From positions 189,880-253,879 of IMG/VR virus record IMGVR_UViG_3300042868_007959: 64,000 nt of DNA; one strand, 5' to 3'. The translations under genes were made by a program, and so were the position numbers. Position 1 is the stretch's first letter. The number at the start of each line of letters is the position of its first letter. This document shows, one piece after another, positions 8,195-32,557 of the stretch. Below the pieces are notes generated by a model. The model had not been told where the DNA came from, searched no databases, and saw only the letters and a list, made by a program, of their open reading frames with translations.

Positions 8195-11044
8195 TTAAAT
8201 GTTATCAAAACTAGCACCTGTGTTAGTGATATTAAATTCTATCGAAATAAATTCTAATGATCTAGTTGGTTTGATAAATATTCTTCCGTTTAATTCGTTT
8301 CTGTCAATAGATTCTGGTGTATCATCTAATGTTACTCTAAAATCAGTTAACCCTCTTTCTTTTCTGATATTATCTAATATTGGATTAACTAAACTTAAGA
8401 ACTGATTTCTTACAACATCATCATTTTGTTCAAACAACAATCTGATAGATACTGCGGATATAAGTTTTCTAGCTTGTAGTAACAATCTTCTAACGTTAAT
8501 TCTGTTAAGAGCACTTTCTCTAACTTGTAATGTTTTATTACCAAAGATAACAACCCCTACATCAGAGAATGTCGCCATAGGATTAATTCTACCTTCATAT
8601 AAATTATCTCTTTCGTCTAATTTAAGTTTAACTCTAGCTTTAATTGCGGTAGTTGTACCTCTATTTAAACCTGCTGCTGCGAACCAAGGGAATGCAACAT
8701 TATCAGTCAATGCGATGTTTCTTACAACTTCTACAGTTGGTGGTAACCAAACATATCTATTATTTTCTGAATCATTCATTTGTAACCAAGGCCAATATGT
8801 AGCGGAATAATTAGAATCTATTCCTGAATCTTCTACAACACTAACTGCCTCTTCCGCTGACAATACAACCCCATCCACATCTACGTCAGGTGTGGTAATT
8901 ATATATAGTGAATCCGCTCTATCAGTTTCAACCATATCAACTGCATTTTCAATTAAACTTGTATTATCTCTCAAATCAATACCAGGTGTTGCAAATACAT
9001 TTATATTTACCGCTTCTGGATTATTAAATGTGTAAATACCATTTAAAAATGCGTAATAATCAGAAGTTATTCCGTCATCACCTTCACTAGTGACAAATGT
9101 ATTAAATATTCCTTTACTTAAACCTAAAATTCCTTTAGTTCCGTTTTTAACGTAATTATCACCATTAGTTCTTTTAGTTCTATATTCGTCCCATCCGTCC
9201 CATCCACCGTAAGGTGCGAAAGTGAATTTTCTAGACGCTATCTTTTCATATGGTCCACCTACTAATGATAAGTCAGTTGTAAATGCTGATATACCAACTT
9301 GTAAAGTAGGTACATAACTTACACTACCTAAATCTATTAAAGAACCAGTTGCGTTCACATCTAAATGGAAACCATCCGTTCTACCTGTATATATACCGTC
9401 ATTAACTGCATTTAATCCCTTATAATCAAAGAAATCTTGATCCACTCCAATATCACTATTTAAACCTAAGTAAGTTTTTCTTAATTTAGATGTATTGAAA
9501 TCTGAGTATTTAGTTTTATATTCTATTTTTGGTGGTAACGCAGTTCTATTAGAACCAACATATGTTCTATTTAACACACCCTCAAATCCTGATGGGAAAT
9601 GGTTACCTAAATCTGGATCGTTTCCGTCCCATAATTCAACCATAACACATTTACTTCTTAATGGAAATTCACCATCAATTGTACCAATTTTTCTTCCTAT
9701 AAATCCAATAGAATTACTATCCATAGATAAAGAAGAATATTTCTCTATTACATTAGGGTTAGCGTCTGTATCGTTAAAACTTCTAATTAACAAATCAAAT
9801 GTTTTATTATCAGGTTGAATGTTTATAATAGAGAACTTAATATCTTGATTTGCAGCATTACCGTCAGATATTGTTACAAACCTAAATAACCTTTGTAATG
9901 TTGACCCTACACCGATACCTTTAACTTCCGAAAGAACCCAAGGAGATAATGCAGTTTTCCAACCCTCTAAATAATTATTAAGGTTATTTGTAATTGTCCC
10001 ACCTATTTCTACAAATGATGTATCTAAACCTCTAACTTTACCTGCACTAATCAAATCTTCCAATACATTAGTATAGATTTCTTCTACCCATAATTCAGTT
10101 TCCTTATCTTGTGTAGATTGACCGAATACTCTAGGTAAGAAATTCTTTTTAGTTCTATCCATAGAAACTTCATAGTTAAAGTTTACCCCATTGAATGTGG
10201 TACCAGTAATATTAAATGAAGCCAATGAGTTTGATGGTAATAATGATGTATTAGTCATTATTGTGTCAGTGGCACCTGTTACATCATATGTTAATGTTTC
10301 TGTCCCATCATAAGATCCTCTCGATCTTAAAGTAGCAATTACACTACCATCTATATCTGTATAACAAGTTGCAGTATAACTAACAACTGTACCACTTGTA
10401 GTTCCTGTTACAAATCCTGTAGAACCACTCCCTTTTGTAAGGACTGTCATATCAAATGTTGCCCCACTGAAATTACAACCATTTTTAACATAATATGGTG
10501 TAGTTACATTAATTGTGTCACCAGTACTTAATAAACCTACTGATGTAAATAACCCATTAATTTGTCCATCCGCATATAATGCAGTTAAATTAGGATCATT
10601 AAATGTAATAGTAACAGGTAATCCCGCAGTAGTTGCAGAATATGTTAATAGTAATGGGTAACTTGTTGTATTTGTAATACCAGTTGTAGTTGGATCCTCT
10701 GAAGAATCTAGTGTGATAGACCACGCATTACCAGCTTTATATCCTGATAAACCTAAAACTCTACTAACATATAATTGATTAGTTTGAGATAGGAACGATT
10801 TTGCGATGTAATTTAATTCATATTTGTTAAAACCATTAGCTTTATATTTTTCGGGGTTTAGTCCACCAAAATAACTAATGAATTCACCGTAATTAGAGAT
10901 GAATACAGGTTCAAAAGCTGGTCCTTTAGGTGTCTCACCTAATAGTCCCAACGTAGTAACCCCAACTTGTCTAGTTACGAATGTTAAGTCTTTTTCAGAT
11001 GTGAACACACCTGGACTCACAAAAATTCTGTCTGTTGATGCCAT
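8195..11044 (-). CDS. gp18: contractile tail sheath protein (T4 gp18-like)
   Basis: 949 aa; SPGVFTSEKD, GETPKGPAFEP, YWPWL, PWFAAAGLNRG, INPMATF, FGNKTLQ, RINVRRLL, FEQND, IKPTRSLEFISIEF. Confidence 0.95.
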   Translation of the reverse strand: MASTDRIFVSPGVFTSEKDLTFVTRQVGVTTLGLLGETPKGPAFEPVFISNYGEFISYFGGLNPEKYKANGFNKYELNYIAKSFLSQTNQLYVSRVLGLSGYKAGNAWSITLDSSEDPTTTGITNTTSYPLLLTYSATTAGLPVTITFNDPNLTALYADGQINGLFTSVGLLSTGDTINVTTPYYVKNGCNFSGATFDMTVLTKGSGSTGFVTGTTSGTVVSYTATCYTDIDGSVIATLRSRGSYDGTETLTYDVTGATDTIMTNTSLLPSNSLASFNITGTTFNGVNFNYEVSMDRTKKNFLPRVFGQSTQDKETELWVEEIYTNVLEDLISAGKVRGLDTSFVEIGGTITNNLNNYLEGWKTALSPWVLSEVKGIGVGSTLQRLFRFVTISDGNAANQDIKFSIINIQPDNKTFDLLIRSFNDTDANPNVIEKYSSLSMDSNSIGFIGRKIGTIDGEFPLRSKCVMVELWDGNDPDLGNHFPSGFEGVLNRTYVGSNRTALPPKIEYKTKYSDFNTSKLRKTYLGLNSDIGVDQDFFDYKGLNAVNDGIYTGRTDGFHLDVNATGSLIDLGSVSYVPTLQVGISAFTTDLSLVGGPYEKIASRKFTFAPYGGWDGWDEYRTKRTNGDNYVKNGTKGILGLSKGIFNTFVTSEGDDGITSDYYAFLNGIYTFNNPEAVNINVFATPGIDLRDNTSLIENAVDMVETDRADSLYIITTPDVDVDGVVLSAEEAVSVVEDSGIDSNYSATYWPWLQMNDSENNRYVWLPPTVEVVRNIALTDNVAFPWFAAAGLNRGTTTAIKARVKLKLDERDNLYEGRINPMATFSDVGVVIFGNKTLQVRESALNRINVRRLLLQARKLISAVSIRLLFEQNDDVVRNQFLSLVNPILDNIRKERGLTDFRVTLDDTPESIDRNELNGRIFIKPTRSLEFISIEFNITNTGASFDNI

Positions 11045-11075
11045 TTAATTTATTTTTTTTACTTATTATTAATTA

Positions 11076-11222
11076 ATTTCTTTAATTATAAATATGCGGT
11101 TTTTTATGAAAAAATATTTTTTGAGTTTGATAAAATAAATTTAGTATGAATTTTATCATACTTTTGTCATACTTATATATAAAAAGGAAATGAAGAGGGA
11201 TAAAAATTTAAAAATCACGCCT
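11076..11222. repeat. direct repeat copy 1 (late motif + operator + 5' end of RHH gene)
   Basis: identical to 13399..13534 except for an 11-bp extra TTTGTCATACT. Confidence 0.9.
11143..11173. promoter_or_regulatory. palindromic operator candidate with extra half-site
   Basis: AGTATGA-ATTTTA-TCATACT-TTTG-TCATACT just upstream of the RHH ORF. Confidence 0.55.
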
Positions 11223-11348
11223 CAAACGCATAAACTTCTAAAGGAATATTGTGAAAATAATGGACTTAAAATGTTTGCGTTTGTGGAGAAATTAATAAAA
11301 GAAAAGTGTAAACCAAAAACAGATTTATATGGTGATGAAATTAATTAA
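11190..11348 (+). CDS. ribbon-helix-helix (Arc/CopG-like) DNA-binding protein, copy 1 (not in ORF track)
   Basis: translated by hand: MKRDKNLKITPQTHKLLKEYCENNGLKMFAFVEKLIKEKCKPKTDLYGDEIN; beta(KNLKI)-helix-G-helix pattern. Confidence 0.7.
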   Translation: MKRDKNLKITPQTHKLLKEYCENNGLKMFAFVEKLIKEKCKPKTDLYGDEIN

Positions 11349-11364
11349 TAATCACCTTCACCTT

Positions 11365-11691: not shown

Positions 11692-11696
11692 TTTAA

Positions 11697-13400
11697 TTAA
11701 TTTTTAATAATCATTATATATAATTCACCCTGTCTATTAAGGGTTAAGTCGGAAGAAATTAAACCACTCATTGATATACCAGCAGAAGTATTCCTAAAAA
11801 TTGCTCTAACATCTAAAGTGTGGTTACCAACACTTAAATTTAATAGTGCCCCCATTGACCAAAGAGCACTCGTCCAACCAGCGTTTACGGTGTTTGGGTT
11901 AGTTGTTGTAATTCTTCTAAATGATCCGTTTGATAGTGGTCCAACACCATCCACCCATAACGCTATATCTACAGTAAAACTATTGCTCGAACCATTTGAA
12001 TTTTGCATACCACCTGATGTGAAAACATAAACTGAACAGTTATTAGGTACAGTTATTGTTTGTGTTAAACCAGGTATTAACTGATAACCAACAGTAGCGT
12101 TAGTCATCGTCAGTGTTGATGTACCATAAGAAGCATAAGTTGTTTGTCCTAATGTACCTACCCCAGCAACTAACTTACCTCCCGTATCGAATGATGCCAC
12201 TTGAGATGGTGTCCCCGATCTATTTGTTACAGTAACAGTAGATGCGGTAGTACTTTGTAACGAAGTATTTCCGTTAACAGTTAAATTTCCTGATACAGTT
12301 CCCCCACTTTTATCATACTTATTTGAAATATTAGTTTGAATTGTTTGAATAATAGTACAACCACTTAAAGTATCACAAGTTAAACCTTGTTGTGTCGGTA
12401 TTGTTGAAACCGCATATGAATAATGAGTGGACCCTTCCGTAACCAATGTTATTATATGTGCTTGATTACTCGTATTAGTTGCTCTAACTTTCGCAACTAT
12501 ACTATCACTAACCGTTAATGGTGTTCCACTAAAATAACCATCAGTAAGTTGCATTGATGGATTAGGTGAATTAGTCGTTACAGGTGTGGGGTCGGTTGCG
12601 AATAACAACGTTTCAGTCCCACCACTTGTTCTTTTATAAACCTCAACAAATATATTAAAAGATGCATTATTATTTTGTTTATAAGAATGTAAATAAAAAC
12701 TCCAAATACCTCCTGGTAATAATGTTCTGTTTAATGGATTTGTTTGAAAAGAGACAATTGTACCAGTTAAACCAGCATTAATTGTCACACCACTTGTTTG
12801 TTCAGACGCAGTGCTAGCAGTTGTACTCAAAAACCTATACCCATTTTTTGGTTGTGATAAGTTTAAGTAAAAAGTTTGACCTCCACCACCACCTCCCGTT
12901 GAGCCAGTAAAATTAATACCAAAATTTGGATATGTTCCATTCACACTTATATTCGTTCCACCTGTTATAGTTACCGTTTGGTCAGGTGATGTATTTACGA
13001 TGGTTACAAGACCGTTAGTTGTGTTTGCAGAAATTCCTGTTCCACCTGTTACACCACTTACAGGTAAATTAAAATATGTTGTAGCCGATATTGTTGTTGC
13101 GGTTAATCCATTCGTAAATGTTGTTGGTCCTGTTACAGTTCCACCACTAAACAATGTATCGGCATAATTAGGTACATTTAAATTATTACCTATATATGTA
13201 GATGGTCCTGAAGTTCCTGATGTGGTTAGAACTAATGATCCACCACCACCTCCTATTGCATTCGCAAGTTGTTGTACTGTTCCCTTATATGATGATCCAT
13301 ATGGATTTTGCGATGTATCACCAGTATTAACTATGTGAATTAAATCATTTAAACCTATACTACTAGCAATTAATCTATCGGTTAATCTTTGTTTACTCAT
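11697..13400 (-). CDS. tail fibre/appendage-like protein
   Basis: 567 aa, G/T/S-rich; YDKSGGTVSGNLTVNG fibre motif; C-terminal beta-sandwich-like LSVGNHTLDVR; ATATTTAT upstream. Confidence 0.65.
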   Translation of the reverse strand: MSKQRLTDRLIASSIGLNDLIHIVNTGDTSQNPYGSSYKGTVQQLANAIGGGGGSLVLTTSGTSGPSTYIGNNLNVPNYADTLFSGGTVTGPTTFTNGLTATTISATTYFNLPVSGVTGGTGISANTTNGLVTIVNTSPDQTVTITGGTNISVNGTYPNFGINFTGSTGGGGGGQTFYLNLSQPKNGYRFLSTTASTASEQTSGVTINAGLTGTIVSFQTNPLNRTLLPGGIWSFYLHSYKQNNNASFNIFVEVYKRTSGGTETLLFATDPTPVTTNSPNPSMQLTDGYFSGTPLTVSDSIVAKVRATNTSNQAHIITLVTEGSTHYSYAVSTIPTQQGLTCDTLSGCTIIQTIQTNISNKYDKSGGTVSGNLTVNGNTSLQSTTASTVTVTNRSGTPSQVASFDTGGKLVAGVGTLGQTTYASYGTSTLTMTNATVGYQLIPGLTQTITVPNNCSVYVFTSGGMQNSNGSSNSFTVDIALWVDGVGPLSNGSFRRITTTNPNTVNAGWTSALWSMGALLNLSVGNHTLDVRAIFRNTSAGISMSGLISSDLTLNRQGELYIMIIKN

Positions 13401-13651: not shown

Positions 13652-13657
13652 AAATCC

Positions 13658-14917
13658 CTAATATAGAGTCCAACCCTGTAAACTACTAATAGACATCTCC
13701 ACTGAAGATGCAGTGGCACCATTAGTTCTTCCTGCCCAAAATGAAAGTAGTGTAGTATTTGATGGTAGGTTTGTTGTTATAGTTCCACTTTCTTGACCCA
13801 ATTGAGTTGTACCGCTAATAGAAGTTATTCTCCATTGTACTGTTGATCCACCAAATGCATTATATAATTCCAAAGAATAGAATTTTGTATTGGCAGCACC
13901 TGCAGTTCTATTAGATGGGAAATTAGTCGCATTTAATGGTATTTTAGTTGCGACACCACTTCCGTCATTATGGAAAATACTCATAAAAGAATCTGCTGGT
14001 GCGGAACCGACACCAATAATATTTAATAATGAACTTACTGCACTTGCACCTATAAGTGTATCATTTAAAGTACCTGATAAACCTGCAAAAAGAAATGAGT
14101 TTGAATTATAAGTAGATTCTGTACCAAAAGTGAAATTTAAAATTGTATAAAAACCTGTTCCCAAACAAAAATCGGTTGGTGATGCCCCTGCCGAATTTGC
14201 ACCTCTATATCCACAAGTTGAGTTTGACGATACGTTACTATTAAAACGACAACGTGGTATTTTTATGGTGCTTGATCCTGCTAAAAAAACAGTTGTTGGT
14301 GTACCCATTGCTACACCTGTTGCTAATCCTGAAACATATACAGTTGTTGTATTAAAACCAAAAGTATAATATCTATCAATATTATAAGCTTGTGGTGTTG
14401 TAAGTGAACCATAAGATGAATTAAAAGAAGTAGGTAAATTTACATATGTAGTTGCAGATATTGTAGAAAAACCACCATAACCATCTGCCCTAATAAAAGC
14501 CGTTTCAGATGATGTGTTATTTTCAACTATTATATTTTTATCCGTATTACTTCCAGTCCCCCCTTTAAATTGGACACCCCCTAATGTTGAGTTAGTGACA
14601 ATTTCTGGGTTTACTGAATTATTATATGCTTGTTGTAATGTTGTTGTTGATAATGGTAAATTTAAATAAGTTGTTGCGGATATTGTATTAGCCGTTAGAC
14701 CACCATTAATTACAAAATTACCAGTTACTGTATCACCTGTTCTATGTACTCTATCCCAACCAATAGGGATGATATCATTAGCGGTTGTACCTGACGTATA
14801 TAAAATAACATCTGAGGTATTTAATGCAATTTCACCTAATTTTATATCACCAGGTAATGGAATTTTACCTGGTACATTAGATCTTTTTAAAAGAAATGTA
14901 CTCTGTCTTTTAGCCAT
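13658..14917 (-). CDS. tail fibre-like protein with Mtd_N-like N-terminus
   Basis: LLKRSNVPGKIP...LGEIALNTSD N-terminal motif; ISATTY(L/V)NLP twice. Confidence 0.65.
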   Translation of the reverse strand: MAKRQSTFLLKRSNVPGKIPLPGDIKLGEIALNTSDVILYTSGTTANDIIPIGWDRVHRTGDTVTGNFVINGGLTANTISATTYLNLPLSTTTLQQAYNNSVNPEIVTNSTLGGVQFKGGTGSNTDKNIIVENNTSSETAFIRADGYGGFSTISATTYVNLPTSFNSSYGSLTTPQAYNIDRYYTFGFNTTTVYVSGLATGVAMGTPTTVFLAGSSTIKIPRCRFNSNVSSNSTCGYRGANSAGASPTDFCLGTGFYTILNFTFGTESTYNSNSFLFAGLSGTLNDTLIGASAVSSLLNIIGVGSAPADSFMSIFHNDGSGVATKIPLNATNFPSNRTAGAANTKFYSLELYNAFGGSTVQWRITSISGTTQLGQESGTITTNLPSNTTLLSFWAGRTNGATASSVEMSISSLQGWTLY

Positions 14918-14998
14918 ATTTATGACAATTTTTATAAATCCTAATTAAAGGTAATTAAAGCATATGTATGCTATTTTAATAAATATCATAAAAAATAA

Positions 14999-15044: not shown

Positions 15045-16262
15045 TTAATAAGAACCACCATCTAAAGTGTCAAATTCGGTAAGAACTCTAACACCTTTTA
15101 TACTACCTGCGGAACCGTTATCAGTAACACCCGTACTTCTTATAATTATATCATTTAATTGTGTAATCCACCCTCTATTAGAATATCCTGTTAAAGATGT
15201 ATATTCTGAAATATTAGGAACTTGTGTTGAGGTTAACCCAGTAAGATTTTGTAACCTAACAATATCAAAATTAACATCTCCATTAGAAACACCATTACCA
15301 TCTTGTATAGCAAAACCTGAATTAACAGATGTTAGTGTAGTACTACCAGTTGGGTTATAATTTAATGTTATATTAGGATCCTCAACATATAATTCACTTG
15401 TAAAAGCAGATATTGAAGGTCCAAATACTTTTAAACTACCTTGTATTGTAACATCACCTGAAGCCTCTATATTACCAACACCTAAAGTATTTGTACCATC
15501 TTCATATGTAAATTCACTTTCATCAACTAACAACCCACCACTACCAACATAAACAACTCTTCCTGATGTTAAATTACTAAATGATAATCCTGAAACAGTA
15601 TTAATTGATTCGGATAATGGTAATACACCACCATTTTGTTCAATACTTAATGTATTGGTTGCGGGATTATAAGTAAATCCTGTGACATATGTATCAGTAA
15701 AAGTGAGAGAAGATAAACTAACTGAATATGGTAAACCCCCATCATTTTTATAAAAATCAATTGAAGTAGTGCCACTATTATATGTACCACCCGTAGTAAA
15801 AGTATTTTCTGTAACTAAAATAAAAGGACCCCCAGACGGTGATATATTATATTCTAATTGTAGTGTTTGGTTATTGGAGTTATTTGTAGCCCCACTAGTT
15901 AAAGTTCCACCAGTAACATACGTACCTATTCCTTGAATCGATGATATATCTGCCAATACAAAACCATTTGTTGTACCTGAAAGAAATTTACCTATTAAAC
16001 CACTACCTGATTGATTTTCATATTTAGTTATTCTATTCCTAATTTTTAACTCATAAAGATTTGATCCTACTTCGAAGAAAGTTGCATTACCTCCCGTACC
16101 CGCTGGAGTCCATTCAGATGTGGATGATGTTACACCTGAGAACATCATTATACCATCCGCAGTGTTTACTATAGGTTCTCCTTTAAGTAATGTTGCCCCC
16201 GAAAAAGGTGCATTAGGGACAGTATTATTTTTTATTACTAATTTAGTCTGTCTATTTGCCAT
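15045..16262 (-). CDS. tail fibre-like structural protein (Mtd_N-like N-terminus)
   Basis: LLKGEPIVNTADG; VEDPNITLN fibre motif; C-terminal LDGGSY. Confidence 0.65.
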   Translation of the reverse strand: MANRQTKLVIKNNTVPNAPFSGATLLKGEPIVNTADGIMMFSGVTSSTSEWTPAGTGGNATFFEVGSNLYELKIRNRITKYENQSGSGLIGKFLSGTTNGFVLADISSIQGIGTYVTGGTLTSGATNNSNNQTLQLEYNISPSGGPFILVTENTFTTGGTYNSGTTSIDFYKNDGGLPYSVSLSSLTFTDTYVTGFTYNPATNTLSIEQNGGVLPLSESINTVSGLSFSNLTSGRVVYVGSGGLLVDESEFTYEDGTNTLGVGNIEASGDVTIQGSLKVFGPSISAFTSELYVEDPNITLNYNPTGSTTLTSVNSGFAIQDGNGVSNGDVNFDIVRLQNLTGLTSTQVPNISEYTSLTGYSNRGWITQLNDIIIRSTGVTDNGSAGSIKGVRVLTEFDTLDGGSY

Positions 16263-16293: not shown

Positions 16294-16914
16294 TTAATAA
16301 GTACCACCCATTAAAGTATCATTTTGTATTATAGAACTATCTGCAGTTATAATTCTTAATTCACTATTACTGTCTAAACCTAAATTTAATGTAGGTGTAG
16401 TTACACTAATAGATGAAGTCCAAACCGTAGAATTACCACTAACAGTATTTATTTCTCTAAATCTTTTTAAATGTGTACCGACATCAGATGTTCCGTCATT
16501 AGTAGGTGTTATATTCCCACCCACTTCAGTATTACCCGTCACCAATAAATCACCATTTATAGTAAAACCAGTAACTTTATTTATTGTTGCGGAAAATTCT
16601 GCATTATCACCTCTAGTGATAATAAAAGTATTTTTATCATCGTATTCAAAATCTATGACACCCGAAGCTCCAGAAATGATAGTATTTATATTCCTATATT
16701 GGACTAATCCCGTCAAATTATCAATAACTAATATACGATTAAGTGTGTTGTTATTAGATACGGAATTTAATTTTAATTGATCTTGAACAGTTACGGGGGA
16801 ACAACCATATATATTACTTGTCCATATACCTGTACACGCAGTAAGTGTCTCAAACTCATTTGTGTTTGTTACAATATAATTTTGTTTTATATTTGAATTA
16901 TCACAACTACTCAT
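16294..16914 (-). CDS. fibre-associated structural protein
   Basis: NITPTNDGTSDVGTHLKRFREI fibre motif; C-terminal LMGGTY. Confidence 0.55.
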   Translation of the reverse strand: MSSCDNSNIKQNYIVTNTNEFETLTACTGIWTSNIYGCSPVTVQDQLKLNSVSNNNTLNRILVIDNLTGLVQYRNINTIISGASGVIDFEYDDKNTFIITRGDNAEFSATINKVTGFTINGDLLVTGNTEVGGNITPTNDGTSDVGTHLKRFREINTVSGNSTVWTSSISVTTPTLNLGLDSNSELRIITADSSIIQNDTLMGGTY

Positions 16915-21343: not shown

Positions 21344-22486
21344 ATGCCAAATTATTTAAATGATGACTTAAAAAATGAATTATTTACACAAATAAAACAT
21401 AGATTAGGTGCACCAATTCGAAAAATTGAGTTAGATTGGGATCAGATGAATTCCCTTTTAGAGACCGCAATTGAGGATTATGCTCAAAGAGTACAAGATT
21501 GGTTGATAGAAAACCAATGGTCTTCAGTATTAGGGAAACAAGCGGATAAAATTGATATTGCATTTGCGTTAACAACAAGATCATTGGATTTTGAAAGTAA
21601 TTTTTCTTATGCGTATTCTAAACAAGTTGGATTACAACAAAGAGGTCCTTGGGAATTAAAGAAAGATTATGTAACTATCATAAGAAATCAACAAGTATAT
21701 CAGATACCTGCTGGTAGAGAAATAAATGAAATATTATGGTTAACACCGAACTCTACTAATCACGCATTATATTCATTTGCGGGATTTGGTGATTATGGTT
21801 TTGGTGGTGGTTTTGGTCAAGTACCTTACGCTGGTTGGGGACAAGGTGGTGGATTAGGTAATGGTGGATTTTATGTAGCACCCGCTTTTGATGTATTACT
21901 TAGGGCAGCTGATTTTAGTTTAAAATCTAAATTATTAAGAAGTGAGTTATCTTATAAAGTTACTGCAGGACCTAATGGTACTAGATTATTACATCTTATG
22001 CCGATACCTGGTAGTAGAATATCTTTTGCATCCGCAGGTTTACAAGGTGGACAATTAGGGATATCGGGTACAAAAGTTTGGTACCACTACTATGAATCGG
22101 GAGATGATAGAGATAAATGTTTAGCAGAAAACTCTGACATTATAAAATTACCTAATGATGTACCATTATCTAAATTAAGATACTCTGATTTAAATGAACC
22201 TACAAAGATTTGGGTTAGAAGATATTTAACTGCATTATTTAAAGAATCTTTAGGTAGAGTAAGAGGTAAATTTAGTGGGGCATTAAAAGTACCAGACGCT
22301 GAGTTAACTATGGATTTTGATAGTTTACTTAATGAAGGTAAAGAAGAACAATTAAAGTTATTAGAACAATTGGATTTAAGATTAGAAAGATTATCTAACG
22401 TAAAACAATTGGAGAATAAAGCTTTAGAGGCAGAAAATTTAAACAAATCATTGACTTATCGACCTTTGGGTCTTTACGTCATATGA
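21344..22486 (+). CDS. gp13: neck protein (T4 gp13-like)
   Basis: LGAPIRKIEL; WVRRYLTALFKESLGRVRGKF; LLNEGKEE. Confidence 0.8.
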   Translation: MPNYLNDDLKNELFTQIKHRLGAPIRKIELDWDQMNSLLETAIEDYAQRVQDWLIENQWSSVLGKQADKIDIAFALTTRSLDFESNFSYAYSKQVGLQQRGPWELKKDYVTIIRNQQVYQIPAGREINEILWLTPNSTNHALYSFAGFGDYGFGGGFGQVPYAGWGQGGGLGNGGFYVAPAFDVLLRAADFSLKSKLLRSELSYKVTAGPNGTRLLHLMPIPGSRISFASAGLQGGQLGISGTKVWYHYYESGDDRDKCLAENSDIIKLPNDVPLSKLRYSDLNEPTKIWVRRYLTALFKESLGRVRGKFSGALKVPDAELTMDFDSLLNEGKEEQLKLLEQLDLRLERLSNVKQLENKALEAENLNKSLTYRPLGLYVI

Positions 22487-25739: not shown

Positions 25740-25751
25740 ATTATATAAATA

Positions 25752-27416
25752 TTAACCATTATTAATTTCTTCCCTTATTGTTGTAATATCTAAACTACAA
25801 CCAAATAATTTAAATTTACTAATCCCACCTTCAAAAGTACCAGCAAAATTTTCTTGTAGTACTAAGTTTTCGTCCTTAATATCAGGACCATTAACCGTAT
25901 TAGATTCTATTAATCCTTGAGTACCTCCACCTAAACTGTAATTAAATGGAACACCTTGTTGTTTTTCTCTATATTCATCTAATTCCCTAAAAATAAACTC
26001 ATCAAAATCCTCTAAAGTCCATTTTAAATATCCATTAACATAAACTGTTAATACACCTTTTCTTCTAGGTTTATTCACTAATTCACATTGGGTATATTGT
26101 TCATAAGGTTTAAACCTTATTGCAACATTTGTCCACACATCTTCTGATATAATACCAGGAGAACTATAACATTCATAAATACTAGTTCCTGTAACATATT
26201 TTGTGGTTACCGAAGTTGCCGTAGTAGTTCCTGTACACCCACATCCACATTGTTCATGACAATCTACTATTGTCGTTGCCGTAACTGCCGAACAAACTCC
26301 TGTCAATATTATAGTTCTAAACCCTATACTTCCATCATCCTTAATTCTAAACCCTAATGCGTTATCTATAATGTCCGCATTTTTATCTTTTTCTTGTGTT
26401 ATTTCTGTAGTTATACCACTAAAACAACAACAACTTGATGGTTGATATACTAAAAAAGGATTATTATTTAACACTTCTTCTGAAATCACAGGTGGGGGTA
26501 AAGGATATCCTGATGAGGTAGTATACCCAGTTTCACCACTAAATAAATCCCAAAACTTATTTTCTGCCCTAGTACCCATATAAAAGAAAAATCCTTTATT
26601 ATTAGGGTATGTATTATTAAGTGTATTACCTACACAAGATTCGGAACTTTTATTTAATAAGAACGTTGCCGTCCACCCATCTAAACATTCGACATCTAAA
26701 CCACCTAATCTTTCAGGTAATATTTGATAATTGTATGGAATTGGTTTTGTATCTAAATAACATTGATACGCCTTATTCGGATCGACAGTACAAGTTTGTC
26801 CTGTTGTATCACCCGTACCACAACAATCAGTTACGGTGTCTCCACTACAAATAGTAGGACATCTAAACCAATCTAACGGCCAAATAAATTTATTATCACT
26901 TATTTCATTGAAATAGGTGATATCAGATAATTTAAAGAATCCTTGATAAAACCCACCACATAATTGAGAATATCTACCTACCTCTAAGTCCGTAAGAACA
27001 TCTATTGGGTAATCGTATGTACAACCAGTAACTCTAGTCATAGAGAACCTTGTATCTGCTGATGTTAATGTTAAAGATGATCCTGTAAACGATGATAAAA
27101 AAGTTGCCCCACTGGTTGGTGTATTACAATCGTATATTATAAAACCATTATCAATACCCGTCAAACCAATATCATTTAATGTGATTCCACTACCATTGAT
27201 TGTTGCACCTGTCCAAGTAGTTAAACTATAAAGAGTATTTCCTGAGTAACACGCATCATTATCAATATCAATGTCAACTAAAATACAATCCTCTAATATT
27301 TGATCATTATCTTGTTCGTCTGTACAATCATAACATAAAAATAAGTCCCAGTAGTCACTGTTACTTAATCTCATTTTTAAACAATTGTCAAAATTATGTT
27401 GGTATATATTACTCAT
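25752..27416 (-). CDS. Cys-rich virion protein with LamG/ConA-like C-terminal domain
   Basis: WTNVAIRF, LTVYVNG, LGGGTQG, FEGGISKFKLF. Confidence 0.55.
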   Translation of the reverse strand: MSNIYQHNFDNCLKMRLSNSDYWDLFLCYDCTDEQDNDQILEDCILVDIDIDNDACYSGNTLYSLTTWTGATINGSGITLNDIGLTGIDNGFIIYDCNTPTSGATFLSSFTGSSLTLTSADTRFSMTRVTGCTYDYPIDVLTDLEVGRYSQLCGGFYQGFFKLSDITYFNEISDNKFIWPLDWFRCPTICSGDTVTDCCGTGDTTGQTCTVDPNKAYQCYLDTKPIPYNYQILPERLGGLDVECLDGWTATFLLNKSSESCVGNTLNNTYPNNKGFFFYMGTRAENKFWDLFSGETGYTTSSGYPLPPPVISEEVLNNNPFLVYQPSSCCCFSGITTEITQEKDKNADIIDNALGFRIKDDGSIGFRTIILTGVCSAVTATTIVDCHEQCGCGCTGTTTATSVTTKYVTGTSIYECYSSPGIISEDVWTNVAIRFKPYEQYTQCELVNKPRRKGVLTVYVNGYLKWTLEDFDEFIFRELDEYREKQQGVPFNYSLGGGTQGLIESNTVNGPDIKDENLVLQENFAGTFEGGISKFKLFGCSLDITTIREEINNG

Positions 27417-30400
27417 CTAATTAAATATAGGGCGATATCATTATTTATATCTTTCATTTTTATCCACCTACTTGGTATCTGTTGATTTTTCAGTACCCTT
27501 ACTTGACCGACTAACCCAACAACATTCCATTCAGGTCTTTCAGATCTAGGGATATATAACATATTAGGATCAAAATTTTGACTTAATTTTGGTGTTTGTT
27601 CCGTTATTGTTTTGTAAATGGTTTCACCACTTTCAGTTATATAATCTATCATATCATATGAATAGTCTTCCATAATATATCTACCCCATTCATCTTTTTC
27701 ATATTTTCCTACCCATTCATCTGCGGTACCTCCTTCATTGTTACCGATAAGTGTAGGGTTAGAAGAAATAACACCCATAGCGTTATTTGCGTCAACACAT
27801 ACTTTTATTTTATCATCTACTAATTCGACTACTGTACCGTAAGGTATTGAATCTCCTGATAAAGATTCAAAGTATTCAGCGTAATCCGCACCAGAGTTAT
27901 ATGTTGCACCAGCACCATAAACATTACCAGCCGAATCGACTCTAAATGCATTTGATCTAGAGGCGTTACTGGTACCTTTACCGATAATGAAGTATTGGTT
28001 AGCGTTTGTTATATTATTATATTTACCAGATACGTGTTGTCCTGCTTCATAAGCAATAGTACCCAAACCCTCTGAGTGAGAATATTGAGTAGTTGCAGAT
28101 GTTTGGTAACCCTCTGAGTGCGAATAATCTCCAGTAGATTCTGTGGAATACCCTTCAGCGTGAGAATATTGACCAATAGATTCTGACCTAAAACCTTCAG
28201 AATGTGAATATGCCCCAATAGAATCAGTATCATATCCTTCAGAATGTGAAGCAGTACCTTGAGCTATTGTAAATCTACCTTCAGAATGTGAATATGACCC
28301 AATAGAATCTGATCTATCACCTTCAGCGTGTGAACTAATTCCTGATGCCAAAGTCTGAAACCCTTCTGAGTGTGAATAGGAAGTTGTTGCAGATGTTTGG
28401 AATCCTTCAGCGTGTGAAGCAATTCCTGATGATAAAGTTTCTCTACCTTCAGCGTGTGAATGTGAATTAGTTGCACTTGTTTGAAGTCCTTCAGCGTGTG
28501 AACTTAGTCCTGATGCCAAAGTTTGTTGACCTTCAGCGTGTGAATAGAAAGTTGTTGCACTTGTTTGATTGCCTTCAGCGTGTGAACTAGTTCCTGTAGC
28601 CAAAGTCTCTGCCCCTTCAGCGTGTGAATAGGAAGTTGTTGCACTTGTTTGATCACCTTCAGCGTGTGAATATACCCCCAATGCTAAAGTAAAGCTACCT
28701 TCAGCGTGTGAACCAGTTCCTGATGCCAAAGTTTGGTTCCCTTCAGCGTGTGAATAGGCAGTTGTTGCAGACGTACTTATACCCTCTGCGTGAGAAGCAG
28801 TTCCTGACGCTAAAGTACCTATACCTTCAGCGTGTGAAGAGTAAGTTGTTGCACTTGTCGGATTAGGAACTAACCCAGATTTACCGAAAAATACCCCACC
28901 TTCTGCGTGTGAAGCAGTTCCTGAAGCAATATTACCGACACCTTCAGAGTGTGAATATTGTCCTGATGCAGTTGTTCCCGATCCTTCAGCGTGTGAAGCA
29001 GTTCCTGATGCAATAGTTGTACCTCCTTCAGCATGAGAAACATCTCCAGATGCTAAAGTACTTACACCTTCAGAGTGTGAATTAATACCACTAGCAGTTG
29101 TAGTATCCCCTTCAGCGTGTGAATTTTGTCCTGATGCCAAAGTCACACGTCCTTCTGCGTGTGACCCAAATCCTGATGCAATAGTTGATTGACCTTCAGC
29201 GTGTGAATGTCGTCCTGACGCTAAAGTACCTATACCTTCAGCGTGTGAAGAGTAAGTTGTTGCACTTGTTGGTATACCTACTAACCCTAACTTACCTAAA
29301 AATGCCCCACCCTCAGCGTGTGAAGCAATACCTGAGGCAATATTAAAATAACCTTCAGCGTGTGAATAATCACCACTTGCGGTTGTAATCCAACCCTCAG
29401 AGTGAGAACTAGTACCACTAGCAGTTGTCTGATAACCTTCAGAGTGTGAATAATCCCCACTCGCAATTGTTTGAAATCCTTCCGCATGTGATGTAGCCCC
29501 ACTTGCGGTTGATAAATTACCTTCAGCATGTGAATAATCACCGATAGCACTTGTTTGAACTCCTTCAGAGTGCGACATAATCCCAATTGCAAATGTATCC
29601 GCCCCTTCAGCGTGTGAAAAATCACCACTAGCAGTTGTTTGGAATCCTTCAGCGTGTGAACCAAAGTTTCCACCTGCAATTGTTTGATAACCTTCCGCAT
29701 GTGATGTATCACCACTTGCGGTTGTCTGATAACCCTGAGCCAATGATAATAAACCACTAGCGACTGATCCACTATTTTTAACCACTATTGCGTCTACACC
29801 TGTTGATGCCGTCCAAAATGTTACTCCTGATGTGGCACCCGATGCAGATAACCAAGTGGCGTTACCAACAGAGTCGGAAACTAAAACATAACCATTTGTT
29901 GCTCCTGATGTAACTTGTAAAGTTGTTGTTTTTGTCTTACCACTAACATCTAGTTTTTCAGATGGTGTCGTAGTTCCAATACCTAAATAACCTGCAATAT
30001 AATTATATCCCTCATCTTTTATATATATACCCCATCTATTTGTTGGTGGGGGGATATTTCCAGATCTTGTGGATTGATCATCCATATAAAACCCATATAT
30101 ATTATTTGTTGATCCATTATGGGTTAAAGTTATATCAAAACCATTCATCCAAAAACCAACATACTCATTTATAGTACCACCTGCAGTCAAATTCCTTAAT
30201 ACAGATGACGAACTTTTAACTATATCATTGTAAGTTCCTGTGTTTGTTTGAATTTGTACTACATTAATTTCGGATGTTAAAGCTTCATTACTATTTAATA
30301 ATGATAAATCACCTGTATATAATATTAGATTTGCCTTTGAATAAAATTCCCCATTTGTTGGTGATGTTATGTTTGGATATAATAGTGTACCGTCACCAAC

Positions 30401-32557
30401 AACATTAGATGATGATGTGGTTGTTGGTCTAAATTCTTTGTATATAGATTTTATAGTAGATGTGTCCGTAGGTGTTGAAACTCCGTCTAAATAATAAAAA
30501 GATGGTGATGTACCTGTTGTTAATGAAGACGTTTTAAAAAACGATGTACCACTAACTGTTAATCTTTCCGTAGGTGAAGACGTACCGATACCAACGTACC
30601 CTCTTGTTACACCACTACCTTGTATATGTATATCGGGTGTATTTCCTGAAGACGCATCTTGACCAGCATAAAATCTTATATAATCTGCACTAGTAGCACC
30701 GTATTCACTTATAATATTTAAACCGTAAGCGTTTACACCTGCATATAAGTGAACATCTCCCGGATTACCATAGTCTGGATATAGTAAATCATCCCAAGAC
30801 CTAATACCTAAACTGACAGATGCTTGTGGTTTTGTTAAATATGGTGGAATCTCCACGCTAAATCTAGGAACATTTGTTTTTCCACTTATTGCAAATCTAC
30901 CCCCTACGGATGTTGGATCATAAAAAAGTCTAGAATTTGTGTTAACGACATCTAATAAATATTGTGGGTTAGATGTATTAATACCAACGTACCCTCTTGT
31001 TACACCACTACCTTGTATATGTATATCAGGAGTTGTACCATTTGCAGTTTGTCCCGCATAGAATCTAATATAGTCTTCAGTACCCGTACCAGGTGAATTA
31101 ATTAAGTTTAACCCATTTGACGCATTACCCGCATATGTAAACATATCCCCTACTTTACCATACACAGGAGTAAGTGTATCATCCCAAGCCCTCATACCTA
31201 ATTGACCTCCCGCAACTGGTTTAGTCAAATATGGTGCAATTGTTATACCTAATCTTGGTAGATTTGTATTTCCACTTATTACAACCAATCCACCAAACGA
31301 TGTGGGATCATAATAAAGTCTAGAATTTGTGTTAACAACATCTAAAGAATATTGTGGAGTCTCTGTACCGATACCTAATCTACTATTGGTAACATCAATT
31401 GTAACTCCACTAGTGGAACCAAAATAAACATTTCCTTCATCCAAAGGATTAACATTTAAAGGAGAACAAGAATGTATGTTCGATACATATAAATCATTGA
31501 CACAATCTCCTGACGAACCTATTGTATCTGCAGAAAAATTAATTATTGTCCCTGAATTCGCACTTAATGATGGATCAAATAACCAAACACCGTTTGAGTC
31601 CGAATATATTCTAGAATCTACACCATTACTGACACCATCTTCTAGTGTAAAACCACCACCGATTGCGGTTAAATGTGTTCCACTATAATTTAAAATAATA
31701 TTATTATCTTTAGATCTAATAATTTCTGTGTTTATTGTAGTGGCAGAACCATTTACAATTACATCACCATTTATAGTAACATCCGAATTGAATGTAATAC
31801 CTGAAGAACAATCATTTATTGTTTCTAAATTAACTATTGGTAAACATGATCCTGAAAGTAATGAAGATAAGGAATTCCAACCCCCTTTACCCGTATCATC
31901 TATTTGAGTCAATACATAATTAGTTGTCGCTGAACTAGCACCATTACTTATAGTAATTTTATTTGTAATTAATCTACCATCTACTGATATATTTTCTTTA
32001 GATGATAAATAATCTAACGGTCCTTTATAATCTAAGGTACCCGCAGAAAAGTTTTCTTGGGAAGCACTTGTGACACCACTAAATACATTGGGATTAAATT
32101 GAGATACATTGATAAAACTATATGTTACACTATAACCAGTATATTCTGTACCTATTATATAGTCACCAGTATACCCTGTTTGTGTTAATGTCCAAAACGG
32201 ACCAACCACTTGTGTGTCCGCACTCAGTATTGTAATGGGTAATGTTAACCCCGAAGTCGTAGCCGAAAATAAAGGATTAGTCCAAGTGGTTGCGGTATAC
32301 CCACTAAAAAGTGGATTGTAATAAGGTGATAATGGGTTTGAGACATCGAAAACGGTAGTTCCTGTGTTCCCACTAAACACTGCGTTTTCTGTCGAAACAA
32401 CCCCTAATGAAACAGTTGTTGCGGTATTGACACCTGTTGGGTAACTACTAAATGGTATTCCTGATAGTATTTTACCGTCAAAAGTTGCAGTTTCACCAGT
32501 TATTATCTTAGCTTGTCTTGAAAGATCTAATAATGTTGTAAATTTATTTATAGGCAT
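27413..32557 (-). CDS. giant tail fibre/appendage with SHAEG (YadA-head-like) repeats and C-terminal peptidase G2 intramolecular chaperone
   Basis: 1714 aa; G(I/V)G(I)GT repeats; 38 SH(A/S)EG repeats; GADYAEYFE...GVIS...RPEWNVVGLVGQVRV. Confidence 0.8.
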   Translation of the reverse strand: MPINKFTTLLDLSRQAKIITGETATFDGKILSGIPFSSYPTGVNTATTVSLGVVSTENAVFSGNTGTTVFDVSNPLSPYYNPLFSGYTATTWTNPLFSATTSGLTLPITILSADTQVVGPFWTLTQTGYTGDYIIGTEYTGYSVTYSFINVSQFNPNVFSGVTSASQENFSAGTLDYKGPLDYLSSKENISVDGRLITNKITISNGASSATTNYVLTQIDDTGKGGWNSLSSLLSGSCLPIVNLETINDCSSGITFNSDVTINGDVIVNGSATTINTEIIRSKDNNIILNYSGTHLTAIGGGFTLEDGVSNGVDSRIYSDSNGVWLFDPSLSANSGTIINFSADTIGSSGDCVNDLYVSNIHSCSPLNVNPLDEGNVYFGSTSGVTIDVTNSRLGIGTETPQYSLDVVNTNSRLYYDPTSFGGLVVISGNTNLPRLGITIAPYLTKPVAGGQLGMRAWDDTLTPVYGKVGDMFTYAGNASNGLNLINSPGTGTEDYIRFYAGQTANGTTPDIHIQGSGVTRGYVGINTSNPQYLLDVVNTNSRLFYDPTSVGGRFAISGKTNVPRFSVEIPPYLTKPQASVSLGIRSWDDLLYPDYGNPGDVHLYAGVNAYGLNIISEYGATSADYIRFYAGQDASSGNTPDIHIQGSGVTRGYVGIGTSSPTERLTVSGTSFFKTSSLTTGTSPSFYYLDGVSTPTDTSTIKSIYKEFRPTTTSSSNVVGDGTLLYPNITSPTNGEFYSKANLILYTGDLSLLNSNEALTSEINVVQIQTNTGTYNDIVKSSSSVLRNLTAGGTINEYVGFWMNGFDITLTHNGSTNNIYGFYMDDQSTRSGNIPPPTNRWGIYIKDEGYNYIAGYLGIGTTTPSEKLDVSGKTKTTTLQVTSGATNGYVLVSDSVGNATWLSASGATSGVTFWTASTGVDAIVVKNSGSVASGLLSLAQGYQTTASGDTSHAEGYQTIAGGNFGSHAEGFQTTASGDFSHAEGADTFAIGIMSHSEGVQTSAIGDYSHAEGNLSTASGATSHAEGFQTIASGDYSHSEGYQTTASGTSSHSEGWITTASGDYSHAEGYFNIASGIASHAEGGAFLGKLGLVGIPTSATTYSSHAEGIGTLASGRHSHAEGQSTIASGFGSHAEGRVTLASGQNSHAEGDTTTASGINSHSEGVSTLASGDVSHAEGGTTIASGTASHAEGSGTTASGQYSHSEGVGNIASGTASHAEGGVFFGKSGLVPNPTSATTYSSHAEGIGTLASGTASHAEGISTSATTAYSHAEGNQTLASGTGSHAEGSFTLALGVYSHAEGDQTSATTSYSHAEGAETLATGTSSHAEGNQTSATTFYSHAEGQQTLASGLSSHAEGLQTSATNSHSHAEGRETLSSGIASHAEGFQTSATTSYSHSEGFQTLASGISSHAEGDRSDSIGSYSHSEGRFTIAQGTASHSEGYDTDSIGAYSHSEGFRSESIGQYSHAEGYSTESTGDYSHSEGYQTSATTQYSHSEGLGTIAYEAGQHVSGKYNNITNANQYFIIGKGTSNASRSNAFRVDSAGNVYGAGATYNSGADYAEYFESLSGDSIPYGTVVELVDDKIKVCVDANNAMGVISSNPTLIGNNEGGTADEWVGKYEKDEWGRYIMEDYSYDMIDYITESGETIYKTITEQTPKLSQNFDPNMLYIPRSERPEWNVVGLVGQVRVLKNQQIPSRWIKMKDINNDIALYLIR
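28060..29750 (-). repeat. coding tandem repeat, about 42-nt unit (CCTTCAGCGTGTGAA core on +)
   Basis: 14-aa SHAEG units; 57-bp exact duplicate at 28802..28858 and 29213..29269. Confidence 0.9.
30588..31027 (-). repeat. internal duplication of about 130 aa in the fibre gene
   Basis: 47-bp exact repeat at 30588..30634 and 30981..31027 (DIHIQGSGVTRGYVGI). Confidence 0.85.

Follow-up and report, generated by a model that had tools for sequence, protein, structure and literature searches.

Glycosylation of virion proteins by phage-encoded enzymes has been shown experimentally only in actinobacteriophages, with hints from one jumbo phage, and no acceptor sequon is known. In mycobacteriophages, O-glycans are reported at the C-termini of capsid and tail-tube subunits (Freeman et al. 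2023, as cited in PMC12619734), and the jumbo phage XacN1 has virion glycoproteins (PMC5852040). [quoted passage not shown] The soluble enzyme SgtA adds O-GlcNAc to Thr in the collagen-like G-P-T repeats of BclA/BclA3, in the context T-G-P-T, and also accepts Ser (PMC7157674). The chlorovirus PBCV-1 glycosylates its capsid protein Vp54 at virus-specific, non-canonical N-T-x-T sequons, using virus-encoded enzymes such as A064R, which has two glycosyltransferase (GT) domains plus a methyltransferase, and builds the glycan in the cytoplasm without host ER/Golgi machinery (PMC9614988).

We examined a 64,000-nucleotide window (positions 189,880 to 253,879 of IMG/VR record IMGVR_UViG_3300042868_007959) from an uncultured 254-kb aquatic jumbo phage. 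Its tail sheath, fibres and a lectin-like protein carry about three times more copies of a short serine/threonine - small residue - any - threonine motif than chance allows, and the phage also encodes an unusually large set of GTs, which may act at these sites. At most sites of a structure model of the lectin-like protein, the motif has the geometry recognised by Aah and TibC, in that the [ST] at the end of a strand is followed by a [GA]-x turn; however, Aah has no sequence consensus whereas here there is a tight one, and Aah and TibC are host enzymes of a different family (not GT2/GT4-like) that act on bacterial adhesins. The SgtA context matches [ST]-G-x-T on a surface fibre protein, but here the motif occurs as isolated units in globular or β-structured domains; we found only five two-triplet runs such as SGETGYT and no collagen Pfam hit, and the GTs show no demonstrated relation to SgtA. 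As in PBCV-1, the virus encodes a multi-GT plus methyltransferase toolkit, here alongside a candidate acceptor-x-x-T pattern, but the chlorovirus linkage is to Asn on the capsid of a eukaryotic virus, whereas here the candidate acceptor is Ser/Thr, the capsid protein is not enriched, and no sequence relationship to A064R was found. In contrast to the C-terminal glycans of mycobacteriophages, the motif is dispersed through the sheath insertion, fibres and receptor-binding protein, and no defined sequon of this kind has been reported. The aquatic jumbo 'moraphages' (PMC12619734), with genomes up to 307 kb, carry PolB and four core GT orthogroups and have predicted Flavobacteriia hosts, which fits the low G+C of this phage (29%) and its four clade-conserved GT genes; that paper describes no motif.

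Enrichment in tail and fibre proteins

A preliminary description of this sequence proposed that [ST]-[GA]-x-[TS] saturates probable surface regions of virion proteins. That observation is confirmed: all of the tetrapeptides it listed are present, and their number exceeds the expectation from local composition. The seven tail/fibre proteins, all encoded on the minus strand, are as follows.

8195..11044 (-), tail sheath (949 aa; matches to phrog_23 and Phage_sheath_1C), 13 motif sites
11697..13400 (-), fibre-like protein (567 aa, 28% S+T) with an SGGTVTG fibre-repeat-like segment and an ISATTYFNLP module, 19 sites
13658..14917 (-), fibre protein (419 aa; phrog_35830) whose N-terminus resembles a long-tail-fibre distal subunit, 8 sites
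15045..16262 (-), fibre protein (405 aa), 15 sites
16294..16914 (-), small fibre/baseplate-associated protein (206 aa), 6 sites
25752..27416 (-), Cys-rich 'LamG' protein, a probable receptor-binding protein whose C-terminal half has a predicted ConA-like/CBM40/pentraxin jelly-roll fold, 18 sites
27413..32557 (-), giant fibre (1714 aa) with a motif-rich N-terminal 940 aa (about nt 29738-32557) followed, by Pfam matches, by YadA-like SHAEG repeats and a C-terminal Peptidase_G2 intramolecular-chaperone domain, 48 sites

Pooled over these seven ORFs (4,814 aa), [ST][GA]x[ST] occurs 127 times against 52.1±6.4 in shuffles within 20-aa windows (z=11.7), and the best of 1000 shuffles reached 72. The stricter pattern [ST][GA]xT occurs 100 times against 28.1 (z=14.3). 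The other 49 ORFs (15,142 aa) give 24 against 23.4. Although local shuffles cannot model every structural sequence correlation, six ORFs are individually significant even against 12-aa local shuffles: the sheath (13 vs ~5.5), 11697-13400 (19 vs ~8.3, z≈4), 15045-16262 (15 vs ~4.2, z 5-6), 16294-16914 (6 vs ~1.2, z≈4.6), 27413-32557 (48 vs ~24.5) and the LamG protein, which gives the strongest signal (18 vs 2.3-4.1, z 7-10.6). ORF 13658-14917 is not significant on its own (8 vs ~5.2, z≈1.3). Sibling patterns of the same composition are not enriched. In an unbiased scan of all single-residue gapped patterns, SG.T and TG.T ranked first and second (z≈8), and SG.T ranked first (z=11) in the first 940 aa of the giant fibre.

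The more specific claims of the preliminary description fared unevenly. In the sheath, 8 of 13 sites lie in the insertion region (aa 101-300, about nt 10145-10744) and only 2 in the conserved C-terminal core, as it had stated, and the rarity of the motif in PolB, the helicase and the GTs is likewise confirmed, with counts at expectation. The capsid protein, whose insertion had been listed among the motif-bearing regions, is not significantly enriched (4 vs 2.2), and several other large ORFs show no excess; the signal is confined to the sheath insertion, the fibres and the lectin-like protein. In the giant fibre, aa 1-940 contain 31 sites against 9.2 (z=8), while the SHAEG repeats (aa 941-1500), also cited as motif-bearing, contain 15 against 14.8, that is, no excess beyond local composition.

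Conservation and residue specificity

The refined motif is Φ-[ST]-[GA]-x-T-Φ, and it is found clade-wide across hundreds of metagenomic relatives. Sites are conserved down to 35% identity, with S↔T and G↔A exchange at the same sites and a third position that is often free. The variable third position claimed in the preliminary description is therefore only partly true, since x is conserved at many individual sites, for example D at LamG site 119 and E at site 293. Sheath sites 136, 174, 193, 213 and 256 are kept in 50-56 of 57 homologs although the region is only ~64% identical, while other sites turn over among close relatives. For fibre 15045-16262, 16 homologs at 44-64% identity all have z of 4.3-13, with conserved sites fSGVT, lSGTT, vTGFT, vSGLT, iSAFT, pTGST and lTGLT. 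All 120 retrieved homologs of the LamG protein keep the excess (median z 9.4), and none had lost the motif. The excess also extends to 8,391 aa with no BLAST homology to any window ORF, in proteins next to distant GT homologs (61 vs 15.5).

We measured residue enrichment at each position in 69 kaa of non-redundant clade proteins. At position 0, S is enriched 3.9x and T 3.5x, but D (0.9x), N (0.7x) and G (0.6x) are not. At +1, G (3.6x) and A (3.5x) are equally enriched. At +3, T is enriched 3.6x and S 1.7x, but V (0.9x) and I (0.8x) are not. Control phages give a flat, generic profile (D 1.6 and S 1.6 at position 0; V 1.3 and T 1.2 at +3). Generic tight β-hairpins and ST-turns also favour D/N before the turn and need Gly rather than Ala within it, and β-strand starts accept V/I; this clade does not show that profile, which argues against an ordinary β-hairpin preference.

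Nor is the excess a property of phage fibres or sheaths in general. T4 gp34 contains no copies in 1289 aa, the homologous sheath of Microcystis phage Mel-JY01 contains none in 812 aa, and LR756508 shows no excess. The whole genome of the T4-like Aeromonas phage Aszh-1 has 2.2 copies per 1000 aa against 14.3 per 1000 aa here. Across these controls the ratios of observed to expected were 0.5-1.4, with no ORF at z>4.

Structural context

In a moderate-confidence model of the LamG protein (pTM 0.69), most sites are tight turns preceding β-strands, at loop-to-strand junctions, with one site at a helix N-terminus. The turns between strands are two-residue turns with a Ser/Thr before the turn. Hydrophobic residues at -1 and +4 are conserved, implying that the two hydroxyls face away from the core rather than being buried; exposure is inferred only from this pattern and from the turn location. 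The full-length sheath model was poor (pLDDT 37, shallow alignment), but the insertion domain at aa 112-230 was confidently modelled as mainly β, with some sites mid-strand. A fold search with this domain gave no match above Z 4.7.

The glycosyltransferase cluster

The preliminary description had pointed to a GT/methyltransferase cluster at 40188..51835. The cluster is real and larger than described, with about 8 GT domains (6 GT-A-like and 2 GT-B-like) and 1-2 methyltransferases.

40188..41444 (+), GT-B-like (GT1/GT4-type) GT, a core gene of the clade; its Atlas feature and structure neighbours are Glycos_transf_1 families
42622..44196 (+), two-domain GT-A glycosyltransferase (Glyco_tranf_2_5 + Glycos_transf_2; Pfam E=1e-28 and 1e-14), a core gene
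44177..45465 (+), two small GT2-like ORFs (44177-44824 and 44824-45465) with weak Glycos_transf_2 hits (E=2e-5 and 2.5e-4)
46178..46885 (+), GT-A-fold (nucleotide-diphospho-sugar transferase-like) protein predicted from Atlas structural neighbours in GT8, GT2 and Nucleotid_trans families (TM 0.62-0.74)
46882..47451 (+), class-I SAM methyltransferase (Methyltransf_23, E=3e-7), to which the neighbouring ORF 45482-46174 is weakly similar (BLAST E=0.03)
49904..51028 (+), second GT-B-like GT, a core gene, with Atlas neighbours in Glycos_transf_1/GT4 families
51059..51835 (+), GT2 glycosyltransferase (Glycos_transf_2, E=1e-15), a core gene

None of the GTs has a TM segment, and no lipid-carrier genes were recognised in the window. 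Four GT genes are conserved across the clade and linked to the fibre and LamG genes. Among 57 GT loci, a homolog of 40188-41444 is present in 42 (and within 10 kb of LamG/fibre genes in six), one of 49904-51028 in 29, and one of 51059-51835 in 25. The two-domain GT has 219 relatives in IMG/VR, but no full-length homolog was found in isolated phages, the controls above included. GT-bearing distant contigs have motif-rich ORFs, and the controls, in which this one GT was searched for and not found, lack the excess; no GT-negative member of the clade itself was found, so co-occurrence, observed in the positive direction within one clade, may simply reflect shared ancestry.

Interpretation

The interpretation offered in the preliminary description, an O-glycosylation sequon giving a whole-virion glycan shield, is partly supported. 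It survived those of its own refutation criteria that could be examined, in that the excess is not explained by S/T/G composition and the sites do not appear to be buried, but the 'whole-virion' extent is not supported. Our analysis establishes the motif, its purifying selection at the level of the pattern, its specificity profile, its distribution and the GT repertoire. That the motif is modified at all, which residue is the acceptor, and that these GTs act on protein rather than on DNA or host glycans are inferences, without direct evidence of modification on any virion protein.

The reading we favour, though tentatively and at less than even likelihood, is that Φ-[ST]-[GA]-x-T-Φ, a selected, clade-specific linear motif at strand-turn-strand junctions on outward-facing parts of the tail, is an acceptor site for cytoplasmic O-glycosylation by the phage's own soluble GTs. 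In this view an initiating GT would recognise the hydroxyl at the start of the turn (position 0, where S≈T), and would need a small neighbour (G or A) and a Thr three residues on as a recognition element (T>>S, as in N-x-T). The remaining GT domains and methyltransferase(s) would extend and cap an oligosaccharide, giving a glycan coat on the tail and fibres but not on the capsid. The residue preferences look like recognition of chemical groups (hydroxyl / small / any / hydroxyl) rather than generic turn propensities. A bolder form, which is possible but doubtful, is that an abundant, globally distributed clade of aquatic jumbo phages uses its own soluble multi-enzyme GT/methyltransferase toolkit to coat its tail sheath, fibres and receptor-binding proteins with a methylated oligosaccharide at this sequon, presented on β-turns. 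This would be the first sequence-defined sequon for phage virion glycosylation, and a tail-directed rather than capsid-directed coat. If the motif is a sequon, glycosylation sites could be predicted from sequence in thousands of environmental phage genomes; it would also explain why large aquatic phages keep many GT genes, and would raise the possibility that glycans on sheaths and fibres affect adsorption, resistance to proteases or grazers, or sticking to particles.

Almost as likely is a structural explanation, in which the motif is the preferred strand-turn-strand or solenoid-corner element of β-hairpin-rich modules that spread by mosaic exchange through the clade's tail proteins and diverged beyond BLAST detection. 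The hydroxyls would then form side-chain/backbone hydrogen bonds (ST-turn-like, Thr ladders), and the GT cluster would be unrelated, acting on DNA or host polysaccharide. Many sites are invariant across ~2000 family members and flanked by conserved hydrophobic residues, as expected for a structural element; known fibre repeats (SGGTxTG) contain the pattern, tandem 'l.vTGNT.l' modules in fibre homologs look like solenoid coils, short modules are shared between fibres, and one control phage has a slight generic excess (ratio 1.3-1.4). A requirement for two hydroxyls would also be unusual for O-GT sequons, which are typically loose. The GTs sit among nucleotide-metabolism genes (HD domain, dUTPase, PhoH), and GT-A enzymes in phages often glycosylate DNA (bioRxiv 10.1101/2023.12.21.572611). 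A dUTPase/dCTP-deaminase-like ORF and an HD-domain ORF are adjacent, while no base hydroxymethylase (ThyS-like), 5mYOX/TET or C5-MTase was recognised by Pfam or NCBIfam within the 64-kb window, which leaves out the other 190 kb of the genome and in which many ORFs have no annotation. Against a structural origin stand the residue profile, the opposite profile of the control phages, the heterogeneous context of the sites (turn, mid-strand and helix N-terminus), their occurrence in unrelated folds and in sequence with no detectable homology, and their absence from the Mel-JY01 sheath. Even if structural, a clade-wide, chemically specific turn motif shared by unrelated folds would be an unusual case.

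It is unlikely, though possible, that the motif is recognised by something other than a GT, such as another modifying enzyme (phosphorylation, acylation), a shared assembly chaperone or decoration protein, or that it forms a weak multivalent ligand-binding surface, for example for host glycans. The hydroxyl/small/hydroxyl specificity, clade specificity and restriction to tail proteins would suit such a role equally, and a SET-domain methyltransferase shows that the phage encodes other protein-modifying enzymes; however, no kinase, acyltransferase or candidate partner was identified in the window, where the only abundant candidate enzymes are GTs. An artefact of S/T/G-rich composition, internal repeats or post hoc definition of the motif is very unlikely. 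The SHAEG count, the non-significant capsid protein and ORF 13658-14917, and the fact that some sites belong to repeated modules such as ISATTYxNLP and to internal duplications point that way, but the shuffles with 20-aa and 12-aa windows, the flat sibling motifs, the unbiased scan, and replication in hundreds of homologs and in non-homologous sequence effectively refute it.

Further searches and motif controls

Searches of PDB and NCBIfam with the GT sequences gave only generic GT2 similarity (chondroitin synthase and EPS-type GTs). Bacterial relatives of the GT were four MAG loci with uninformative context, and precomputed Pfam annotation of gene context added nothing new. The 735-kb phage LR756501 has a GT-B homolog, but the 41 kb around it holds no S/T-rich ORFs.

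Known sequons do not account for the signal. N-x-[ST] shows no consistent excess (z between -2.3 and 2.2), and the Bacteroidota general O-glycosylation sequon D-[ST]-[AILVMT] is not enriched in any of the eight structural ORFs (z between -1.6 and 0.9). A single shared homologous domain was ruled out, as all-versus-all BLAST of the motif proteins found only a 31-aa module (shared by 11697-13400 and 13658-14917) and a 59-aa module. A DNA-level motif was also ruled out: 16 different codon pairs are used, the hexamers occur almost only in frame, and T/G codon usage matches the gene-wide background. The A-class sites are not due to the ISATTYxNLP or SHAEG modules, since 326 of 364 lie elsewhere. 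Cys is enriched 3.2x at +3, but this comes mostly from a few conserved modules and we did not use it.

Genomic context

The window has a G+C content of 29% and forms the last 64 kb of the 253,879-bp IMG/VR contig UViG_3300042868_007959, which is from an uncultured jumbo myovirus. A nucleotide search returned no match to any isolated phage, and the best relative of the tail sheath is that of Microcystis phage Mel-JY01, at 33% identity. The structural genes lie on the minus strand up to 32.5 kb, while nearly all ORFs from 32.6 to 58 kb lie on the plus strand, with a sign change in GC skew there. No tRNA or tmRNA genes were found in this 64-kb end of the contig. The region from 0.2 to 32.5 kb, together with the major capsid gene, contains the following:

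8195-11044 (-), tail sheath (matches to phrog_23 and Phage_sheath_1C)
11697-13400 and 13658-14917 (-), two of several fibre-like ORFs on this strand, another being 15045-16262
18522-20315 (+), helicase
22448-25315 (-), family-B DNA polymerase (PolB)
25752-27416 (-), Cys-rich protein whose C-terminal half models as a ConA-like/CBM40/pentraxin jelly roll (the LamG-like protein)
27413-32557 (-), 1714-aa giant fibre with YadA-like repeats and a Peptidase_G2 chaperone domain
59005-60762, major capsid protein

The helicase and polymerase are embedded between the fibre/baseplate genes and the LamG/giant-fibre genes, which is an unusual mixing of replication and tail modules. The giant fibre combines a motif-rich N-terminal 940 aa, YadA-head-like SHAEG repeats and a C-terminal Peptidase_G2 autoproteolytic chaperone domain, and its N-terminal part has an internal duplication of about 130 aa (ISGNTNLPR...IHIQGSGVTRGYVGI near aa 428-520, repeated near aa 558-650).

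Enrichment of the motif

The preliminary description had observed that the tetrapeptide [ST]-[GA]-x-[TS] is dense in the structural proteins, and this observation is real: every tetrapeptide it quoted is present. Against whole-protein shuffles, six ORFs have z of 4-11, while all non-structural ORFs sit at expectation. Because a region rich in S, T and G might inflate the count, we repeated the test with shuffles confined to windows of 40, 20 or 12 aa, which preserve local composition. The six ORFs remain significant, and all same-composition sibling patterns ([ST]x[GA][ST], [GA][ST]x[ST] and others) are flat. Local shuffles do not capture every structural correlation. Pooled, the seven tail/fibre ORFs give 127 sites where 52.1±6.4 are expected (z=11.7; the maximum of 1000 shuffles was 72), and the other 49 ORFs give 24 against 23.4. 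To avoid relying on a motif defined after the fact, we also scored every single-residue gapped pattern. SG.T and TG.T ranked first and second (21 observed against 4.6 expected, and 26 against 6.8), and SG.T ranked first in the first 940 aa of the giant fibre (15 against 1.5).

Two narrower claims of the preliminary description fail. It had placed motifs even inside the SHAEG repeats, where the count equals the local expectation (15 against 14.8), and in an insertion of the capsid protein, which is not significantly enriched (4 against 2.2). ORF 13658-14917 is also not significant on its own.

Refinement of the motif

We measured enrichment by position in 112 non-redundant S/T-rich ORFs of the clade (69 kaa).

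Residue enrichment around the motif in clade ORFs
Position -1: enriched, V/F/L/I
Position 0: enriched, S 3.9x, T 3.5x; not enriched, D 0.9x, N 0.7x, G 0.6x
Position +1: enriched, G 3.6x, A 3.5x
Position +2: near background
Position +3: enriched, T 3.6x, C 3.2x, S 1.7x; not enriched, V 0.9x, I 0.8x
Position +4: enriched, Y/F/V/I

The motif is therefore Φ-[ST]-[GA]-x-T-Φ. The class with Ala at +1 is general and not an artefact of two repeated modules, as 326 of 364 sites lie elsewhere. The Cys signal at +3 comes mostly from a few conserved modules, and we discount it. One conserved module, T-I-S-A-T-T-Y-x-N-L-P, occurs once in fibre 11697-13400 and twice in 13658-14917, and recurs 29 times in non-redundant fibres of the clade.

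Codon analysis shows selection at the protein level: the motif is encoded by 16 codon pairs, almost only in frame. In the six enriched ORFs, Ser at position 0 is encoded by AGT in 71% of cases, against 29% gene-wide. AGT is the Ser codon one mutation from Thr ACT, which fits the frequent exchange of S and T seen at these sites.

Conservation

The LamG-like family has about 2000 members from freshwater and ocean samples, and all 120 members that we retrieved keep the excess, with a median z of 9.4. In an alignment of 41 sequences at 47-86% identity, position 0 is S or T in about 89% of residues, with free exchange between the two. Position +1 is G or A, sometimes swapping at the same site (S-[A23/G17]-D-T), position +3 is T or S in about 89%, and positions -1 and +4 are conserved hydrophobics. 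Nine loci reaching 35% identity show the same picture, as do 16 homologs of fibre 15045-16262 (z 4.3-13). In 57 sheath homologs, five sites in the variable insertion, which is only about 64% identical, are kept in 50-56 sequences while x varies; at site 174, for example, x is D17/S16/Q13/T5. Six other sites are present in only about 25 of 57, which is turnover.

Comparison with other phages and proteins

The pattern is not generic, as judged from a small control set of four genomes or genome segments. T4 gp34 has no [ST]G.T in 1289 aa, and gp37 has 6 where 2.6 are expected. The Mel-JY01 sheath has none in 812 aa, and its other large structural ORFs have none. LR756508 shows no excess. Across the whole T4-like Aeromonas phage Aszh-1, S/T-rich ORFs have 2.2 sites per 1000 aa (ratio 1.4, no ORF at z>4), compared with 14.3 per 1000 aa in the window (ratio 3.8). 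In 86 kaa of control proteins the specificity profile is flat and generic: at position 0, D 1.6 ≈ S 1.6 and T 0.9; at +1, G 1.2 = A 1.2; at +3, V 1.3 ≈ T 1.2. Across 206 retrieved loci of the clade (1584 distinct ORFs), by contrast, low-S/T ORFs are at expectation (78 against 73) while S/T-rich ORFs are 3-4x enriched.

Nor is the signal due to one shared domain. All-vs-all BLAST among the motif proteins finds only a 31-aa and a 59-aa shared module. Next to distant GT homologs (43-50% identity) lie large proteins that share only the ConA-like domain with the window; in their 8,391 aa with no BLAST homology to any window ORF, the motif is still 3.9x enriched (61 against 15.5). The LamG-like protein itself is very Cys-rich (CCCF and CGCGC clusters). 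In distant relatives (retrieved loci L059, L074, L081, L099 and others) the same jelly-roll domain is fused to different, non-homologous parts of 700-1400 aa and stays a few kb from the GT cluster, which is conserved synteny.

Predicted structural context

The model of the LamG-like protein is of moderate quality (pLDDT 64, pTM 0.69). It places most sites of the N-domain at a two-residue turn leading into a β-strand: for example, S58-G-N-T61 leads into strand 61-67, T111-G-S-S114 into strand 114-117, and S119-A-D-T122 into strand 123-129. One site is at a helix N-terminus. The model of the sheath was unusable overall, but its insertion at aa 112-230 is confident (pLDDT 86-92), and there the sites lie both at strand starts and inside long strands. 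With hydrophobic residues at -1 and +4, the hydroxyls at 0 and +3 should face away from the core, although this is inferred from the sequence pattern and not from computed accessibility.

The glycosyltransferase cluster

A Pfam search identified a two-domain GT-A enzyme (42622-44196), three more GT2-like ORFs, a methyltransferase, a SET-domain protein, PhoH and a dUTPase. Structural look-alikes in the Atlas add the following:

40188-41444 (+), GT-B-like enzyme
46178-46885, GT-A-fold protein
49904-51028, GT-B-like enzyme

This gives a total of about 8 GT domains, none with a predicted TM segment. Among the annotated ORFs of the window, many others having no annotation at all, we recognized no lipid-carrier, flippase or polymerase gene, no sugar-nucleotide gene, and no hydroxymethylase or TET-like gene. 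Four GT genes (those starting at 40188, 42622, 49904 and 51059) recur across the clade, and the homolog of the GT-B-like gene at 40188 lies within 10 kb of LamG or fibre genes in six independently retrieved loci. This co-occurrence of GTs and motif was shown only in the positive direction and within one clade. The two-domain GT has no full-length homolog in isolated phages. The scale of this soluble GT machinery resembles what PBCV-1 uses for its capsid glycan (PMC9614988), and it matches the "four core GT orthogroups" of the aquatic "moraphages" (PMC12619734), which may be this clade.

Interpretation

Three facts need explaining together: a tight linear pattern is under selection in unrelated tail proteins, it is specific to one clade, and its residue preferences are for chemical groups (hydroxyl, small, any, hydroxyl) rather than for conformational propensities. 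These come from the analysis itself; that any motif residue is modified, and that the GTs are the enzymes responsible, is inferred, with no experimental evidence of modification. A modification site for a clade-specific enzyme would explain all three facts, and the only abundant candidate enzymes are the GTs. The geometry matches the strand-loop-strand element, with the acceptor at the loop start, that the Aah/TibC O-glycosyltransferases recognize (PMC3835316), and T-G-x-T is the context in which SgtA glycosylates BclA3 (PMC7157674). The asymmetry between positions (S≈T at 0, T>>S at +3) recalls acceptor-plus-helper sequons such as N-x-T and the N-T-x-T of PBCV-1. We therefore tentatively favor an O-glycosylation sequon. 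The reading offered in the preliminary description, a sequon serving the GT/methyltransferase cluster, is supported in part.

The main alternative, which we consider only slightly less likely, is a clade-specific structural turn or solenoid-corner motif spread by module exchange, with the GTs acting elsewhere. The rival role for the GTs, DNA glycosylation by GT-A enzymes, is well documented in phages (bioRxiv 10.1101/2023.12.21.572611) and cannot be excluded here, because our searches did not extend to the other 190 kb of the genome. The structural explanation is favored by the invariance of many sites, their hydrophobic flanks and their location at turns, but it is disfavored by the specificity profile and by the absence of the motif in other lineages.

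Other genes in the glycosyltransferase region

A 126-aa SET-domain protein (48362-48742, +; PF00856, E=1e-17) sits directly after PhoH inside the GT cluster. SET-domain lysine methyltransferases are rare in phages, although PBCV-1 has one. Directly after the last GT, a 244-aa ORF (51843-52577, +) has a weak Sigma70_r2 match (E=3e-4) and is possibly a phage sigma factor. The GT-B-like enzyme at 40188-41444 has a 35%-identical full-length homolog in a 735-kb uncultured phage (LR756501.1, 540613-541803), as well as 22-27%-identical homologs in about 130 Escherichia and Klebsiella myoviruses, some of which are annotated as glycosyltransferase or "disaccharide synthase".
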